From the sequence record MT133560.1: a stretch of 64,000 nucleotides of DNA; one strand, written 5' to 3'. Below, piece by piece: positions 2,724-52,836 of this stretch. The first letter of the stretch is position 1. Each line of letters begins with the position of its first letter. The notes beneath the pieces are model-generated. The model was given only the letters and a program-made list of their open reading frames with translations, made no database searches and was not told the origin of the DNA. A program made the position numbers and the translations under genes.

Positions 2724-3239
2724 ATGTTCGAAATTAAATTTGCTAAAAAAGAACAATTTCCTGGCCGTGGTCACTGCATCGAACTTTATGGTGATTATGT
2801 CACCGAGCGTGTATGGCATGCAGTGAAACAAATGGTTGAATGCAACATCACCAATCACGAGTTTTATAAAGCAAAAGAAGGTTTCAGTGTATTCTTCCAG
2901 GGTGGACATGATAACCCTCATGGGAAATGGATCCTTCTGGAATTCTGGGTAGATGATATCGAAAAGACCCGTGAGTTCGTTCGTCTCTTGACCGTCACTA
3001 TTAATCGAGTATTGGTGGAGCGCTTTACTCAAATCTGCATTAACCCTAATCAAATGGGTTATGCAGATGGGGCAGGTGCGTATGTTGCACTTGGTGAAAT
3101 CCATAAAGAAACTGGATGTCGTGTTAATTGGGGTAGTCCGACTACACTTATTACCTTCTATCCTGAAAATAACCTAGAACATCGGAAGGTACTCGACTTG
3201 TGTGAAACCTTCGAACTCCCTGTAACTAGCTGGGAATGA
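2724..3239 (+). CDS. hypothetical early protein
   Basis: 171-aa ORF with AAGGA RBS, downstream of an early promoter. Confidence 0.8.
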   Translation: MFEIKFAKKEQFPGRGHCIELYGDYVTERVWHAVKQMVECNITNHEFYKAKEGFSVFFQGGHDNPHGKWILLEFWVDDIEKTREFVRLLTVTINRVLVERFTQICINPNQMGYADGAGAYVALGEIHKETGCRVNWGSPTTLITFYPENNLEHRKVLDLCETFELPVTSWE

Positions 3240-3493
3240 ATGGAGAATTAAATACCATGTATATAGTTATCCACAGAGACGAGTCTGAAAGACATGAACT
3301 GACTGTAGGTAATCCTAAAGATCTTATCGCAATCTTAGTCATTCTGGAAAATAGCGATAAAGTCATCGAATATAAAGTTATCGATTCAGATGCTGGTGTA
3401 GTCAAGGACTTTAGATACTCGTTTGGTTGGGGTGACGGGTTCTTCACTAAAAATGCAAAAGATAATTTTAACTGGAATAAATCGAGTAAATAA
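3236..3493 (+). CDS. hypothetical protein
   Basis: 85-aa ORF with ATGA overlap. Confidence 0.7.
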   Translation: MNGELNTMYIVIHRDESERHELTVGNPKDLIAILVILENSDKVIEYKVIDSDAGVVKDFRYSFGWGDGFFTKNAKDNFNWNKSSK

Positions 3494-3495
3494 TA

Positions 3496-3705
3496 ATGAC
3501 TGAGCAAAAGATTAGTAGTGAAGCTGTATCTGCATTTATACGTTCTCGGGGCGATCATGTTTGTTCCATTCGTGATACGATGCACGTTTATGTCGAATCT
3601 GATGAGGTGATAGTCAAGATTATAGATAATAACTCAGGTGGTTCAGCAACACACTACTCAGGTTGTGATGTAAACAACTTTGAAAGAATGTATGGTTCCG
3701 CCTAA
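3496..3705 (+). CDS. hypothetical protein
   Basis: 69-aa ORF followed by a terminator. Confidence 0.7.
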   Translation: MTEQKISSEAVSAFIRSRGDHVCSIRDTMHVYVESDEVIVKIIDNNSGGSATHYSGCDVNNFERMYGSA

Positions 3706-3714
3706 TGAAATACA

Positions 3715-3739
3715 CCCTCCCTTCGGGGAGGGCTTTATT
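3715..3739 (+). terminator. intrinsic terminator
   Basis: ccctccc-TTCG-gggaggg followed by ctttatt. Confidence 0.8.
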
Positions 3740-3783
3740 ATTAATACGCACATATTTTTTTAATATAGTAATTGGAGTTTATA

Positions 3784-4116
3784 ATGTTTAATAAGAACTT
3801 TATCAATGGTATTCAAATTCTTGTAACCGCCACCACTGTTACCACTGCTATAATTAAATTAGTAGAGGCATATGACAAGTTAAGTGAAGAAAGAGCTGCT
3901 ACAGATGCATGTAAAAAAATACATGTAGAGATTCAAAAACTAACCAGCACGTTTATCGAACAAGATATACCCAATGAAGAACGTTGTGTTAAACTGCGCA
4001 AGGCTGTTGATTCACTAATTAATAAACATTGTTCTAAATTGACAGGTCGTAGGCGACTACGTGCTGTTGCTGAAATCACTCGACATGTAGATGACTATTG
4101 TCGGATATGGAAATAA
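3784..4116 (+). CDS. putative membrane-anchored helical protein (paralogue of 5405..5803)
   Basis: N-terminal hydrophobic segment; GGAG RBS before ATG 3784. Confidence 0.7.
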   Translation: MFNKNFINGIQILVTATTVTTAIIKLVEAYDKLSEERAATDACKKIHVEIQKLTSTFIEQDIPNEERCVKLRKAVDSLINKHCSKLTGRRRLRAVAEITRHVDDYCRIWK

Positions 4117-4120
4117 AAAA

Positions 4121-4168
4121 TACATTCAAACCTATTTAAACAGTATATTACAAAAGTGTAATTAAACC
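4121..4168 (+). promoter_or_regulatory. phage early promoter (TATATTAC at 4144-4151)
   Basis: core motif plus repeated context. Confidence 0.85.
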
Positions 4169-4196
4169 TATTAAATTAGTAAAAAGGAATCAAACC

Positions 4197-4457
4197 ATGG
4201 CAACTTTCCTGACTTTCAAATCTGACGAAGACTTGGAGAAAGAAGCAATCCGCCGTGCACGTGCTATCATGGGTTTCCGTGGTGACCGTGATGCAGCTAC
4301 TCGTCAGGTATGCATCAATCCTGTACGAGGTCAAGATTACCGTAACTGGTTGTCCCATAGTGCTACTTGGAAAGATGGTAACATTGTTGTTGATGAAGAT
4401 AGTCTCATTGAGCTAGCCCGTGCCATCGTTGATGAGACCTATCTGCACGATATGTAA
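4197..4457 (+). CDS. hypothetical early protein
   Basis: 86-aa ORF with AAGGA RBS. Confidence 0.8.
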   Translation: MATFLTFKSDEDLEKEAIRRARAIMGFRGDRDAATRQVCINPVRGQDYRNWLSHSATWKDGNIVVDEDSLIELARAIVDETYLHDM

Positions 4458-4510
4458 TACCGATAGCTTATCTCAATAACCTCGAAGCAGTCTAATCAAA
4501 GGAAATCATC

Positions 4511-4666
4511 ATGAAAGCAATTGCCCTGGTTGTCGTTGGTATGGTATTCGGTGGTCTGTTCATCAATGCCAACTATGACAATGGTTCTAAGACTACTGCT
4601 CAAGAAGAAGTTGTACTGGGTCATCGCATCGCCCCTAATGGCGTTGAAATTCTCGTTACCAAATAA
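4511..4666 (+). CDS. small membrane or secreted protein (51 aa, not in ORF track)
   Basis: manual translation MKAIALVVVGMVFGGLFINANYDNG...EILVTK; AAGGA RBS. Confidence 0.7.
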   Translation: MKAIALVVVGMVFGGLFINANYDNGSKTTAQEEVVLGHRIAPNGVEILVTK

Positions 4667-46530: not shown

Positions 46531-48411
46531 ATGGCTGTTAACGAAAACGAAATCGGCACCGTTCAAACTCAAGCTACTGCTCCTGCTCCGCAACCCACTG
46601 CACAGCGTCAAGCTCAACGTCCTACTGGCGCGCCTGGGTCTACTACTGGCATTAACCATCTAATGCGTCGCTCTGGTCGACTAGATGGCTCTGATGCTCG
46701 TTCAGCAGATGCCCTACAAGTATTCACTAAAGTAAAAGAAGAAGCAATCCGCCATCAGGACCTACCTGATGACTTCGATATCCATCGTTTCGATCGTGAT
46801 GCGCAACAAGTTGGTATGGCTGGTCTACTCATTGTTAAACTAGCTAAAGATATCAATGGTTCCATGAAGGCATTCGTTCGTACTCTAGTACTCGATAACC
46901 TACCTGGTACTCGCATCCGTCCCCGTACCCACAAAATCAACAATGGTCTAACCGACGACATCATTGAAGAGAAGGTACTACCGCGTGATGTATTCACTGC
47001 TCAATACTGGAGCAAGATCGGCGAGTTCCTACGGAACCGTTACAACATCCCTGGTCTAGAAGTACTATCTGCCGGTCCCCGTGCAGTGTATGCTGACTTC
47101 GACTTCAAAGATGAACTAGCTGTTAAGAACCTACTAGTTGAATCTGTTAACATCTGTGAAGATGCTATTGCACGTCGTAACAATGAGACTCCGTTCTCTA
47201 TTGCGACCCACATCAAAGCAGAAAACGAACAGCTTACCTGCAACCTAGACTACAATGGTATTCCGGTTAAAGATAGCTGTGGTAATCCGATCCGTTCTGA
47301 CATGGTCATCTCCACTAGCCGTGGTAAGAAAACCAACGTACCTGAGAACGAGTTCTATGATACCGATAGCCAGCTAAACCAAGTTAGTCTATTCGTAGAT
47401 CTACATTGGACTCCGACCACTGGCCAGCAACAAGGTATGTTTGGCGTAACTCTACCTGGTGCAGCTCTACCTCCGCAGTTCACTCCTTACATCGTTATCA
47501 CTGACGTTCGTAAGGCATCCTGGATCCAAGCATGGACTCTAGAAATGTGGCTGTTCGCGCTTGGTAACGCGTATCGTGCAACTGCATCTCAGGCATGGGC
47601 TCGTACTCTAATGCCGAAGATCGCTACTAGTAAGATGCGTGATATTGGTGCACTTGGTTATTACTCAGAGCTAGGTAAAGCGATTGAAACTCGCACCGAA
47701 GCATTCATGGCAGACGACAGCAACTTCGTAATGCTAATGAACAAGATGGTTAACCAGAACCCTGCATTCCAGATCGATATCGATCCAATGGGCGACAACT
47801 CAGCTATTGAGCAAGTCATCCTAGATGCAGCTGGTGGCGTAAACCAAGCTCGTGCAGTTAGCCTGATCTTCCAAGCTCTAACTAACCTATACGGCACTGA
47901 TTTCCGTCAGTTCTATAACCTAGCTGAAGCTGGTCCGATTATCTTTGACAACCATCATGAAGTAGACCTCGGTCACTACACTGATGAGCATGGCGAACTA
48001 AGCGACCGTCGTGATCTTGACGTTCTAGGTGCCATGAACATGTCTGAAGGTAATGACCAAGAGTGGAAGACCTGGTATGCTACTCAGGTAGGTAATGACC
48101 ACATTGTGCGTCGTATGAATAACAGTAAAGGCTTCGACAAGATGTACCTAGGTAACGTTACCTATACTGGTCGTGCTCGTCGTCTAACCTTTAACCCGAA
48201 ATTCATCACCGCAATGGATGCCGCAGCAGCAGCCGCTGGTGTAACTGTAACCATGGAAAACCTAATTACCAACTTCGGTCAACAGCGCTTCGCTGGTTAC
48301 ACCGGTATGGGTAACATGGCTGTTTCTGGTAGTGCACAAGTTGGTATGGCTGGCAGCATGGGTCAAACTTACGGCGCTCCTTCCTATAATGCACCGGGTA
48401 CCTGGTACTAA
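46531..48411 (+). CDS. chmA: chimallin, major phage-nucleus shell protein (gp54-like)
   Basis: 626 aa; sequence recalled as phiKZ chimallin; disordered termini; directly upstream of nvRNAP beta'. Confidence 0.93.
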
Positions 48412-48805: not shown

Positions 48806-49942
48806 ATGGGTCTTTATGCCAAAGTTGTTGATCATAATGAAGTTCATGATCAATTTACGGGTAAACGAATTTATGCCAATGATTACAATACGAGTAACTC
48901 AGATGAGAAAGAAGAATTTGATAGACATTTCTATTCTCATTTCCAAGATTCAGAAGCAATTGAAAGTAGTGTAAGCTGTGATTGTCGAGCAATCGAAGAC
49001 GCACATAAACTCGGAGTAATCTGTGATATTTGTAATACTCCAGTTGTCAATACTTCTAGCCGCCCTATCGAACCATCAATGTGGGTTCGTACACCAAAAC
49101 ATGTACGTAGCCTAATTAACCCACGTTTAATCATTATGCTAACCGGATATCTAGTAACTAAAGAATTCGATTTCTTAGCATATCTAACTGATACTTCTTA
49201 TCGATACGATGTAGAATCTATTGGTTCTAAGGAAACACGCAGGAAAGTAGATAGGCTACTGCATCGAGGATTTGAAAGAGGATTAAATCACTTCATTGAT
49301 AATTTCAATGAGATCTTCCAATTCCTACTAGATGCAAATATTATCTCTAATAATAAATCCGAATTCGCTCAATTCGTTGCTCAGAATAAAGATAAGTTAT
49401 TCCCTAAATATTTACCAGTTCCTTCTAAACTCTGTTTCGTAGCAGAATCAACCACATCTGGTACTTACTTAGATAAACCAATTGAAGCAGCAATTGATGC
49501 TACCTTAACCTTCGCTAGTATTGATGCATCATCTGTACCACTTAGTCCAATTAAAGCTCAGAATAGGACTATGCGAGGACTAAGACTATATGGCCAGTTC
49601 TACGAGATCTACGCAAAATCACGAATTGCTCAAAAGCCTGGTCTTGCTCGGCGTCACATGTTTGGTGCTCGTCTCAACGCTACGGCACGTGCAGTAATCA
49701 CTTCTATTAGTGACCCGCATGATTATGATGAACTACATATCCCTTGGGGGGTAGGTTGTCAATTATTAAAGTATCATCTAACCAATAAACTAAAAGCAAA
49801 GTTTAACATGACAACTCGTGAAGCATTCTCATTTGTATATGAGAATGTACTTCAATATAACCAAATCATTGCAGATCTATTTAAAGAGCTAATTGCAGAA
49901 GCAGCCCCTTATAAAGGGATGGGTTGTACTTTTCACCGAAAT
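48806..49942 (+). CDS. non-virion RNA polymerase beta' N-terminal subunit, exon 1 (gp55-like)
   Basis: Zn-binding CDC...CDIC; GLARRHMFGARLNATARAVIT resembles beta' GKRVDYSGRSVI; ends at HRN just before the PTL motif. Confidence 0.93.
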
Positions 49943-51186
49943 TAATCTATTAAGTTAAAGCGCTACAGATTCTGGGTGTGGTAACCAGGAATCTCTAATG
50001 AGGAATTATGAATGAAGAAATAAGATGGCGTAAAATACCTGGTTTCAATAATTACGAAGTCAGTGATCATGGTCAAGTTAGGAACCTTAAAGGCGAATTA
50101 ATCTCACAACACGAGAATAAGACAACTAAAGGTACTTACCTTACCGTTAACATCCACAATGATGACGGTATTAGAAAGATTCGTTATGTTCATCGTTTTG
50201 TGTGCATGGCGTTTCATGGGTTACCTGAAAACTTTAATGAGTTGGACGTTAACCACAAAGATACCATTAAGCATAATAATCATTACCTTAACCTAGAGTG
50301 GGAAACTCGTAGCGGTAATGTTAAGCATGCATTTATAACCGGTGCCAATAAACATGCACTCGCTGTTAAATGTACAAACATTCTGACTGGTGAAGTAAAT
50401 AACTTCATCTCGATGAAAGAAGTAGCCGAGTTCCTAGAGCTTGGTCACAATAAAGGGTTACATGTCGTATTGGGTCATTTAGTTAAACCATTCAGAGGTA
50501 AATATGTATTCGAAGTAAGTGGGGATTATCACCCACAGAAGCGTAAGAATGCAATTGAAGTTTATTGCATAGACTTCAAGACCAACACCTTTGGACGATA
50601 TGTAAACCTAACGCAGTTACAACTTAGAACCGGGTTAATTAAAGGGTCAGTGCAGGACATTTTAAAGAAACCAGATCTAAGATTATTCAACGGTGTTGTT
50701 ATCTGTAGGGTCGATGATAAGGAACGGCTATTCGAATACGTTTCTAACCTAACCCAAGAAATGGTTAACAAATCCATTGATGATTACAATAGATACAAAG
50801 CGCGTAGAGAGAAGCTACATACCACCTAAGCAATTAGTGTAGCGACTTAACTTAATATGGGTTTCCTTGTATCAGAAATGATACTCGACAAAACTTCTTG
50901 AATTGCTGGAACAACTCGTTAGGTCAGTTAGCTACAATAGTTCCGAAAGGTTCTATGAATGCTTAAGAATAACTGAATAGAGTCAATCAGCAGCTAAGAT
51001 CCTAACCCGAAAGGTATGGATAAAGTTCAACGACTAGTGCATTGGCACGTAGGGTCCAAGTGGACTCGAAGTGGGAAGCACCTTACTGGGTAAAGCCAAA
51101 GGTGAAGATATAGTCTCAACGTCTAGCGAGAGCTAGAGCTGCACGTAATGGTGCGGGTTAGCCTAACGAACTAACTGAAGATATTG
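49943..51186 (+). other. group I intron 1 (IA-like) with HNH ORF in the P1 loop
   Basis: P aattgctggaa 50901, Q aatcagcagc 50985, R gttcaacgacta 51025, S aagatatagtct 51105; exon ends in U and intron ends in G; IGS gtttc 50861-50865 pairs with exon gaaau. Confidence 0.92.
50008..50829 (+). CDS. intron-encoded HNH homing endonuclease (NUMOD4-HNH-NUMOD1-like)
   Basis: WRKIPGFNNYEVSDHGQVR, VHRFVCMAF, VNHKDTIKHNNHYLNLEW; GAGGA RBS. Confidence 0.92.
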   Translation: MNEEIRWRKIPGFNNYEVSDHGQVRNLKGELISQHENKTTKGTYLTVNIHNDDGIRKIRYVHRFVCMAFHGLPENFNELDVNHKDTIKHNNHYLNLEWETRSGNVKHAFITGANKHALAVKCTNILTGEVNNFISMKEVAEFLELGHNKGLHVVLGHLVKPFRGKYVFEVSGDYHPQKRKNAIEVYCIDFKTNTFGRYVNLTQLQLRTGLIKGSVQDILKKPDLRLFNGVVICRVDDKERLFEYVSNLTQEMVNKSIDDYNRYKARREKLHTT

Positions 51187-51312
51187 CCAACGCTTCAACG
51201 TGGATCTACGCAGCAGTTCTTTATTACTAAAGTAAAAGATGACATTAATGATAATTCTATCAGCATGTCAGTTTTATGCCTTAAGGCTCCAAACGCAGAT
51301 TTCGACGGAGAT
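51187..51312 (+). CDS. nvRNAP beta' subunit exon 2 (catalytic loop; absent from ORF track)
   Basis: manual translation PTLQRGSTQQFFITKVKDDINDNSISMSVLCLKAPNADFDGD; 126 nt, in frame with both flanking exons. Confidence 0.95.
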
Positions 51313-52836
51313 TTTAATTGGTCTCCTAACCTTCTTAATTGCTGGAACCTCCTTAGAGCCTAACTACCAAAGCAGATAGCGAAAGCTAAAATGTAACGGT
51401 TTGAAAAGTGTTAGGATTGGACAATCAGCAGCGAAGCTTCTACGTATTGCCGTGAGGCGAGATAGGAAGAACGTTCAACGACTATCGAAACCACTGCGAA
51501 AGCAGCCAAGGGAGTAGAGTAGGGCCAAGTGGTCCGAAATAGAAGGCTTCCCTCTGGGAAGAAGATATAGTCTCACCATCTAGTGAAAGCTAGAGCAGTT
51601 ACTTAATGTCGGGAGATATTAAGTGGACGGTACAGCAGCGACATGTCTTCCAATGGAGGATATGTGTTTATTTACAGTCGTATACCCAAATCGAGAGAAA
51701 TTGTGATTCCCGGTACATTCGGGCGTTATAGACTGACTCTGGATGGGTTAGTCTATGATCGATTTTTGGATAAATTGATAGATCCAATAAACCGACATTA
51801 CGTTCTTGAATTACCATGGCATAGACTACCCATTCATGTTACTAAGTTGATAGCAGTGTGTTTTAAAGGCTGGCATGCGCCATTAGAGTTTGTTAGCCGC
51901 TGCGAAATATTGTTTTCTGATGGAGATGAAGACAATATTCATCCTAGAAACTTGATTTGGAAATTCCCGGAAGAAGGATTGGAGGTTCCCACCTTCCCAG
52001 GATATTATTTCATCCCTAGTTTTACCTGCTATGCAATCAATGATGAACTCAAGGTCATAAGTCTTTTTGAAGGTTCAGCTAAATTAACAAGTTTGGCGAC
52101 AACTGGATACAGAGATCTTGGATTGCGTCGAGATGATGGCACCTATGTAGGAACGAATTTACACCGTGTAGCTGCACTGACATTTATTGAATACGATAAC
52201 ACCATCAATGAGAAAGTGGTCAACCACATAGATGGTGATCGTGACAATACAGTACCCGATAACCTAGAATGGGTAACCCAGAGTGAAAATGTGTTGCATG
52301 GAAATGCAATCAAAACCGGTTATATTGGATCAGCAAAGAATACCGCGATCATGAGAATGTTGAAAAATCGCGGAATTAACACGGACGGAATTGTTCTTGA
52401 GCACGACGGTATTGAGATAAAGGATATCGTTACGGGTGAAATCAGGAAATATGACTCGCAAAAGAAAGCAAGTGAGGCGATAGGGGTTAGTGTAGGTACG
52501 ATTTCTTTGAAAGTTAGCGGACATGCAATTTATCCAGTCATTATGGATAGGTACATTGTACGTCGGGTTGGTTCAGAATGGCCAACCTGGGATGAATCCA
52601 TTGAGTATAGTCAGGCTAAAAATAAGACCACACTTGTGAAAAATGTGGAAACTGGCGAGATTTTGAAATACAAATCAGCCAAGCAGGCATATCTCGATCT
52701 TGGATTATCAAAGAAAGTAGTAACTAGCAAACTCAAAAAGAAAGACCGTCGACCAATTAATGGGTTCATTTTTAAATATGAAAATGACCCAGATGATTTT
52801 TAGACATGTCGCTGACGATGCTGTATGAAGATAGTG
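51313..52836 (+). other. group I intron 2 (IA-like) with HNH ORF in the P9 region
   Basis: P 51337, Q 51423, R 51473, S 51562; IGS gtctcc 51321-51326 pairs with exon ggagau; terminal G at 52836. Confidence 0.93.
51643..52803 (+). CDS. intron-encoded HNH homing endonuclease (gp56-like)
   Basis: NLHRVAALTF, VVNHIDGDRDNTVPDNLEWVTQSEN; degenerate N-terminal HNH copy; two NUMOD1-like repeats. Confidence 0.92.
   Translation: MSSNGGYVFIYSRIPKSREIVIPGTFGRYRLTLDGLVYDRFLDKLIDPINRHYVLELPWHRLPIHVTKLIAVCFKGWHAPLEFVSRCEILFSDGDEDNIHPRNLIWKFPEEGLEVPTFPGYYFIPSFTCYAINDELKVISLFEGSAKLTSLATTGYRDLGLRRDDGTYVGTNLHRVAALTFIEYDNTINEKVVNHIDGDRDNTVPDNLEWVTQSENVLHGNAIKTGYIGSAKNTAIMRMLKNRGINTDGIVLEHDGIEIKDIVTGEIRKYDSQKKASEAIGVSVGTISLKVSGHAIYPVIMDRYIVRRVGSEWPTWDESIEYSQAKNKTTLVKNVETGEILKYKSAKQAYLDLGLSKKVVTSKLKKKDRRPINGFIFKYENDPDDF

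Follow-up and report, generated by a model that had tools for sequence, protein, structure and literature searches.

A probable mobile group I intron with an HNH endonuclease gene in its P1 stem-loop in the non-virion RNA polymerase beta' gene of Pseudomonas phage fnug

Described systems and the setting of the fnug intron

In the Physarum Pp.LSU3 intron, the open reading frame (ORF) of the endonuclease I-PpoI lies at the 5' end of a group I intron, in the P1 region. Splicing of Pp.LSU3 takes place in a nucleus free of ribosomes, and I-PpoI is translated from the intron RNA after export. I-PpoI is a His-Cys box enzyme from a eukaryotic rDNA intron, and its likeness to the intron of Pseudomonas phage fnug described here is an analogy of mechanism only. 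In the Bacillus phages SPO1 and SP82, the nicking HNH enzymes I-HmuI and I-HmuII (PDB 1U3E) are encoded in a group I intron of an essential phage polymerase gene, a setting that recurs in fnug; the host gene encodes a DNA polymerase in the Bacillus phages and an RNA polymerase (RNAP) in fnug, and the C-terminal DNA-binding part of the enzyme differs. I-HmuI and I-HmuII, the subject of work by Goodrich-Blair and Shub in 1996, are said to be the model for homing with exclusion of flanking markers between sister phages. For the intron nuclease gp210 of phage PhiPA3, activity, import and the effect on fitness have been shown experimentally (PMC11620839). Birkholz et al. (2024) attribute the interference exerted by gp210 either to separate nuclei or to poor recombinational rescue between two genomes that share about 60% identity at the locus; given sufficient homology, their expectation is that the intron spreads (PMC11620839). 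A sequence-only reading of the fnug locus had invoked gp210 as a precedent, and its statement that gp210 interferes with phiKZ is true; however, the target of gp210 is gp178, the beta gene of the virion RNAP (vRNAP), and not the gene of the non-virion RNAP (nvRNAP) (PMC11620839).

The window analyzed here, a stretch of 64,000 nt, comprises bases 1-64000 of phage fnug (MT133560.1; species Phikzvirus phiKZ), and its positions 49700-51400 (1.7 kb) matched that record at 100% with the same coordinates. All features described below are located on the plus strand. The chimallin gene (PHIKZ054) occupies 46531-48411, and the ORF at 48806-49945 is annotated as the homolog of PHIKZ055, the N-terminal beta' subunit of the nvRNAP. 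Exon 1 of this gene (48806-49942; phiKZ gp55 homolog) ends in ...TFHRN, exon 2 (51187-51312, 126 nt) encodes PTLQRGS...NADFDGD, and group I intron 1 (49943-51186, 1244 nt) is inserted between them in phase 0, after the N codon and before the P codon (...TFHRN/PTLQRGS...). In phiKZ and PA7, the exons are contiguous, and the last 30 nt of exon 1 are fused directly to the first 30 nt of exon 2. Consequently, the insert is exactly 49943-51186, and its removal restores the uninterrupted host gene with the fusion point seen in phiKZ and PA7. This span had been proposed from the sequence alone and is confirmed by the exon fusion, and its identity as a group I intron by an Rfam match of 87.5 bits. Only the joined exons give an intact gene, and the intron must therefore splice itself out of the transcript. 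Similarly, the proposal that the invariant HRN/PTL codons of this essential nvRNAP subunit gene are the homing site is supported by the sequence comparisons.

Intron 2 (51313-52836) follows exon 2, and an Rfam scan placed a second group I core at 51291-51595. Two distinct intron sites are found at the catalytic loop (window 51282-51312; phiKZ locus 2744-2851 and 4224-4241): the phiKZ gp56 intron is inserted at KAPN/ADFDGD with its ORF 5' of the core, and fnug intron 2 is inserted 18 nt further, at ADFDGD/QLN, with its ORF 3' of the core. Contigs from phiKZ RNA libraries join the end of exon 2 (51312) straight to CAATTGAAT..., the start of the last exon, and these CAATTGAAT junction contigs are in vivo evidence that the phiKZ gp56 intron is spliced. 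In phage KEN49, the gp55 gene gives three Rfam group I matches (locus 2744-3093, 3202-4574, and 4593 onward) and, judging from these matches, appears to hold three group I introns, which leave a micro-exon of 18 nt (4575-4592) whose whole coding content is the catalytic aspartate loop, ADFDGD. When public RNA runs were searched for the fnug stretch, none contained half of its words, and four runs aligned to the stretch yielded nothing but transcripts of phiKZ and fragments from wastewater. In these runs, the 49942>51187 joint was rejected as evidence of splicing, as it carries phiKZ SNPs and represents the intron-less DNA of phiKZ.

The ribozyme core and the P1 extension that encloses the ORF

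The Rfam group I model RF00028 matches 50843-51138 over its full length (model positions 1-253) at 87.5 bits, against a gathering score of 50, and the last intron base, directly before exon 2, is a G (G51186, the omega G), as is typical of group I introns. The ribozyme core extends from 50869 to 51186 and was delimited by the Rfam alignment, motif positions and sub-domain folds. It consists of P2 (50869-50884), P3 (50894-50900/51072-51078), P4 (50904-50909/50987-50992), P5 (50913-50918/50979-50983, with a long P5 extension), P6 (about 50993-51026), P7 (51032-51036/51111-51115), P8 (51079-51084/51099-51104), P9 (51122-51137) and P9.1 (51139-51156). In addition, two elements between P7 and the 3' strand of P3, namely P7.1 (51037-51048) and P7.2 (51053-51067), fold independently, and with P2-P9, P7.1 and P7.2 present, the core is IA2-like by its sequence. 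Another observation concerns intron 1 of OMKO1, which is identical to the fnug intron except that the P6 hairpin (window 50996-51024) is swapped for an unrelated sequence; this swap is a modular exchange within the ribozyme.

The internal guide region lies at 50858-50866. Within it, GUUUC (50861-50865) pairs with the end of exon 1 to form P1, and P10, as read from the sequence, could form between UGG (50858-50860) and the CCA with which exon 2 begins. The guide motif GGTTTCC is invariant in all nine ORF-bearing lineages and in the three ORF-less copies compared. In the unconstrained minimum free energy (MFE) fold of 49925-50885, the last five nucleotides of exon 1 (G49938-U49942) form the exon strand of a 5-bp P1 with G50861-C50865, and U49942, the 5' splice-site U, forms the expected U.G pair with G50861. 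The fold continues from P1 straight into the helices of two complementary arms, which comprise 11 bp, a 2x2 internal loop and 7 bp. The P1 that Rfam draws at 50847-50866 was rejected as mis-paired, the true 5' strand being about 900 nt upstream, and the MFE fold was used instead.

The 5' arm (49948-49967) and the 3' arm (50838-50857) form the longest inverted repeat of the region (20 nt, 90% complementary), and their complementarity of 18/20 was reached in none of 100 dinucleotide shuffles, the best of which gave 17. The sequence-only reading had described such arms bracketing the ORF and had placed the ORF within P1, between the 5' splice site and the internal guide sequence; both claims hold. 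In each of the nine lineages with the ORF, the best pairing partner of the initial 45 nt of the intron is the 45 nt before the guide, ahead of 178-287 control windows, and the arm sequences themselves vary among these lineages. Independent proof of the location of the ORF comes from natural introns that have no ORF and carry a small hairpin at the same place. KEN49 has a 350-nt ORF-less intron at HRN/PTL with a core essentially identical to that of fnug, and a hairpin of 7 bp with a loop of 4 nt stands in place of the whole segment between TAAT and the guide (GGTTTCC). In KEN19 and LC, the ORF-less intron measures 305 nt and its core is of the Churi type, and its P1 hairpin is one base different from that of KEN49. 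As for the 3' limit of the ORF in metagenomic relatives, the stop codon of the HNH gene directly abuts the guide sequence in three contigs (L012, L017 and L018), and in a fourth (L015, 1906-3189) the called HNH ORF extends beyond the guide into P2-P5 of the core.

The ORF within P1 (50008-50829) encodes a protein of 273 aa with Pfam matches above the cut-offs to NUMOD4 (residues 6-59) and HNH_3 (residues 59-105). Its best match is I-HmuI, by sequence (1U3E, E 2e-6) and by structure, the predicted model (mean pLDDT 85) matching 1u3e_M in Foldseek with an E value of 2.3e-10 and a probability of 1.00. This bears out the earlier assignment of the ORF as an HNH endonuclease gene. The residues H62, N82, H83, N91, N95 and N104 are invariant across 20 homologs, and the catalytic H83 aligns with H82 of gp210, the residue whose change to arginine abolishes nicking (PMC11620839). 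Among five short-form lineages, dN/dS is 0.06-0.09 with dS saturated, which indicates purifying selection on the HNH protein. In the C-terminal half, no NUMOD1 match was obtained from Pfam, even at an E value of 5; residues 113-245 align to the NUMOD1-repeat region of phiKZ gp56, and the model contains two strand-strand-helix-helix units, so that on the predicted structure this half appears to hold two diverged NUMOD1-like repeats. The proteins of the sister clade are 406-427 aa long, and the fnug type is without about 130 C-terminal residues of the 406-aa relatives, which correspond to two further DNA-binding repeats. Based on the sequence and predicted-fold matches, the product is most likely an I-HmuI-like NUMOD4-HNH nicking homing endonuclease.

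The leader of the ORF contains a further conserved element. The small hairpin that had been noticed upstream of the ribosome binding site is real: it spans 49967-49994 (-11.5 kcal/mol, z -2.2), and equivalents exist in eight further lineages, i.e., in all nine that bear the ORF, with stems that differ around the invariant loop UGUGG (49977-49981). These hairpins were folded singly, because their differing bulges leave no common structure in an ungapped alignment. A Shine-Dalgarno-like GAGGA (50000-50004) stands 3 nt before the ATG at 50008, and relatives retain GAGG ahead of their conserved start, MNEEI. The sequence UACCAC (50820-50825), in the last codons of the ORF (CAU ACC ACC UAA), is the complement of the loop element GUGGUA (49978-49983). 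In each of the nine lineages, the GUGGNN loop element has exactly one perfect complement in the intron, and this complement is always located at homologous x-(T/A)-T codons (NTT/HTT/CAT) near the end of the HNH ORF. The two variable positions covary between loop and partner, being UA:UA in four lineages, CG:CG in two and UG:CA in three, and such changes occur in both protein clades. This covariation supports a long-range pairing of the loop with the end of the ORF, which would close the ORF together with the arms and whose role may be that of a folding aid, of translational control or of stability. The hairpin motif GGNTGTGGYRNCC occurs once in the 64-kb window and, in the other loci compared, only in copies of the same cassette; a general signal was thus rejected, the motif not being common to the other HNH genes.

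Natural states of the site and candidate explanations

A census of 44 distinct P. aeruginosa Phikzvirus genomes, with counts taken from two combined sequence searches, found the intron with its ORF in 8, an ORF-less intron in 9 and no intron in 27. The ORF-bearing copies are about 99% identical in fnug, ANB1, OMKO1, KTN4, SL2 and fMGyn-Pae01, and about 77% identical in Churi and GUMS; of the nine ORF-less introns, those of KEN49, KEN19 and LC were read directly, and six were deduced from the match span. The fnug-type and Churi-type cores both occur in ORF-less and ORF-bearing versions. The paper on KTN4 names HNH genes as a visible difference from phiKZ and does not analyze them (PMC4908380). 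Among the 27 intron-less phages, an 80-nt target around the site is matched 80/80 in 19, and phiKZ matches 79/80; viewed as a 72-nt target, the match is 71-72/72 in phiKZ and PA7 (71/72 in phiKZ), and the site is invariant at the protein level. PA7, Brmt and W10-2 have exons 100% identical to those of fnug and yet have no intron, which implies that gain or loss has been recent and precise. The flanks around the site are 96-100% identical in P. aeruginosa Phikzviruses. Outside this group, HNH homologs with 52-79% identity are located at HRN/PTL, just after chimallin, in seven metagenomic chimallivirus contigs, and by these comparisons the nuclease lineage is stably tied to HRN/PTL. Relatives in Erwinia phages (33% identity) were set aside as uninformative on this site, as they are free-standing genes next to nrdB.

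A separate allele is present in T2P and, by identity, in U1B, U5 and phi9_PA9. These phages are intron-less and have AAC rather than AAU as the last codon of exon 1, followed by CCG ACC. This allele therefore offers no U for the U.G pair at the splice site; it differs at three positions adjoining the junction and may be refractory to homing.

The flanking haplotypes are mosaic. A comparison of three-way SNPs among fnug, KTN4 and phiKZ and a haplotype table of ten phages revealed no clean co-conversion tract tied to the intron. KTN4 is fnug-like across the whole 11 kb upstream, the SNP patch at 49733-49918 in the ten-phage table is not linked to the state of the intron, and OMKO1 carries the intron and yet has the phiKZ-type patch. 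The genomes of fnug and phiKZ (window 49733-49918 and 51187-51281) differ at 11 positions within the final 210 nt of exon 1, compared with about 20 over the 5.5 kb that come before.

Based on the results presented above, 49943-51186 is probably a mobile IA2-like group I intron with an I-HmuI-type nicking homing endonuclease in P1. The intron would self-splice from the nvRNAP beta' transcript, and its P1 stem-loop would hold a self-contained cassette of arm, leader hairpin, ribosome binding site, HNH ORF and arm. The pairing of the arms, together with that of the loop with the end of the ORF, may hold the ends of the insert of about 900 nt together, so that the 5' splice site would meet the guide. 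If an intron-less Phikzvirus infected the same cell, the enzyme would nick the uninterrupted HRN/PTL site in its genome; the intron-bearing genome would then serve as the repair template, and the rival would acquire the intron together with some flanking markers, i.e., homing with marker exclusion.

An alternative that does not exclude homing is that the HNH protein serves as a weapon, which would enter the nucleus of a rival, nick its nvRNAP gene and lower its yield to the advantage of fnug-type phages; this is possible but doubtful. The precedent is that gp210 nicks phiKZ gp178 and, when imported, reduces the plating of phiKZ by about 5 logs, and that homing can become interference where the genomes are kept spatially apart (PMC11620839). 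The architecture of gp210, with the ORF 5' of the core, is alike, and an intact target is present in phages that share the host (19 at 80/80; 71/72 nt in phiKZ). On the other hand, flanks that are 96-100% identical between sisters are the situation in which the gp210 paper expects spread and not killing (PMC11620839), the diverged flanks that would limit rescue are not seen among P. aeruginosa Phikzviruses, and with such flanks ordinary homing is expected if the nucleus is shared. Interference would need a rival genome in a nucleus of its own that still imports the enzyme, which is conceivable. The presence of an ORF-less intron, which would destroy the site, in 9 of the 44 sister phages and of AAC instead of AAU at the junction in four phages is compatible with selection for resistance; however, ORF-less introns are equally predicted by a neutral homing cycle, and the AAC allele fits either. 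The fnug HNH protein is not an ortholog of gp210; the two share 26% identity over 140 aa and are encoded within different host genes. The weapon reading, resting as it does on the gp210 analogy, is plausible but unsupported.

Improbable, in turn, is a resident intron that is no longer mobile, whose HNH protein would have no site-specific activity, for instance through C-terminal truncation, and would be kept as a maturase-like helper or neutral passenger. The shortness of the protein (273 aa, compared with 406-427 aa in the sister clade), its want of two DNA-binding repeats, the lack of a passing NUMOD1 match in Pfam and the failure of the haplotype comparison to find a clean co-conversion tract would agree with this, but the low dN/dS between the five short-form lineages, the retention of all HNH motif residues, the confident I-HmuI-like model and the variation in intron presence between phages with 100% identical exons argue against it. 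It has also been considered that an HNH cassette entered the P1 loop of an older ORF-less intron as an independent invader, cuts elsewhere and does not mobilize the intron. The existence of both core types with and without the ORF is in line with such an entry, as are the P1 hairpins of the ORF-less introns, which are one base apart on the two cores and point to modular exchange, and the nearest relatives outside Pseudomonas phages, the free-standing genes next to nrdB; yet the HNH lineage is tied to HRN/PTL over nine diverged lineages and two core types, as expected if HRN/PTL is its target, and this origin is very improbable.

Beyond the preferred reading of a mobile intron, a broader and speculative proposal, which we consider unlikely, is that the cassette carries a conserved RNA device, the leader hairpin with its loop paired to codons near the end of the ORF, that couples the folding of P1 over the insert of about 900 nt with export of the excised intron and cytoplasmic translation of the nuclease, and that the nine ORF-less introns and the AAC allele are immunity alleles selected in an ongoing, endonuclease-driven contest over a gene with three intron sites in 150 nt.

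Comparison with the known introns

PhiPA3 gp210 and the fnug enzyme are alike in that each is encoded in a group I intron that interrupts the gene of a multisubunit RNAP in a Pseudomonas phage that forms a nucleus, with the HNH ORF 5' of the core and the insertion at invariant codons of the catalytic region, and each has an I-HmuI-like NUMOD4/HNH domain with the catalytic histidine aligned. The host genes differ, being the vRNAP beta gene (phiKZ gp178 homolog) for gp210 and the nvRNAP beta' gene (gp55) for fnug. The identity of 26% is confined to the nuclease domain, and the C-terminal halves are unrelated or rearranged. In addition, the potential victims are near-identical sisters for fnug, whereas for gp210 the victim is a relative about 60% identical at the locus. 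Compared at the level of sequence, gp210 is a fair architectural analogue. Similarly, the phiKZ gp56 intron (PHIKZ056) resides, like fnug intron 1, in gp55, roughly 100 nt further downstream, and its ORF likewise precedes the core. Its HNH protein is the closest paralog from a characterized genome (34% identity over 244 aa); it has 334 aa with three clear NUMOD1 repeats, and phiKZ, in which the intron interrupts KAPN/ADFDGD, is without fnug intron 1.

At one site in an essential gene, near-identical culturable phages of one host exhibit three natural states, namely, intron with nuclease, intron only and empty. This polymorphism is a natural test bed for the conditions under which a homing endonuclease spreads or kills, and it would test the interference idea drawn from gp210 in the commoner setting of closely related competitors. 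The covarying loop pairing is a small and directly mutable RNA element, which may show how P1 tolerates a large ORF and by what route a protein encoded in an intron comes to be made where splicing and translation are confined to separate compartments. In kind, the architecture of the intron is already known from the described systems; what fnug and its sisters add is the three-state natural polymorphism and the covarying pairing of the leader.
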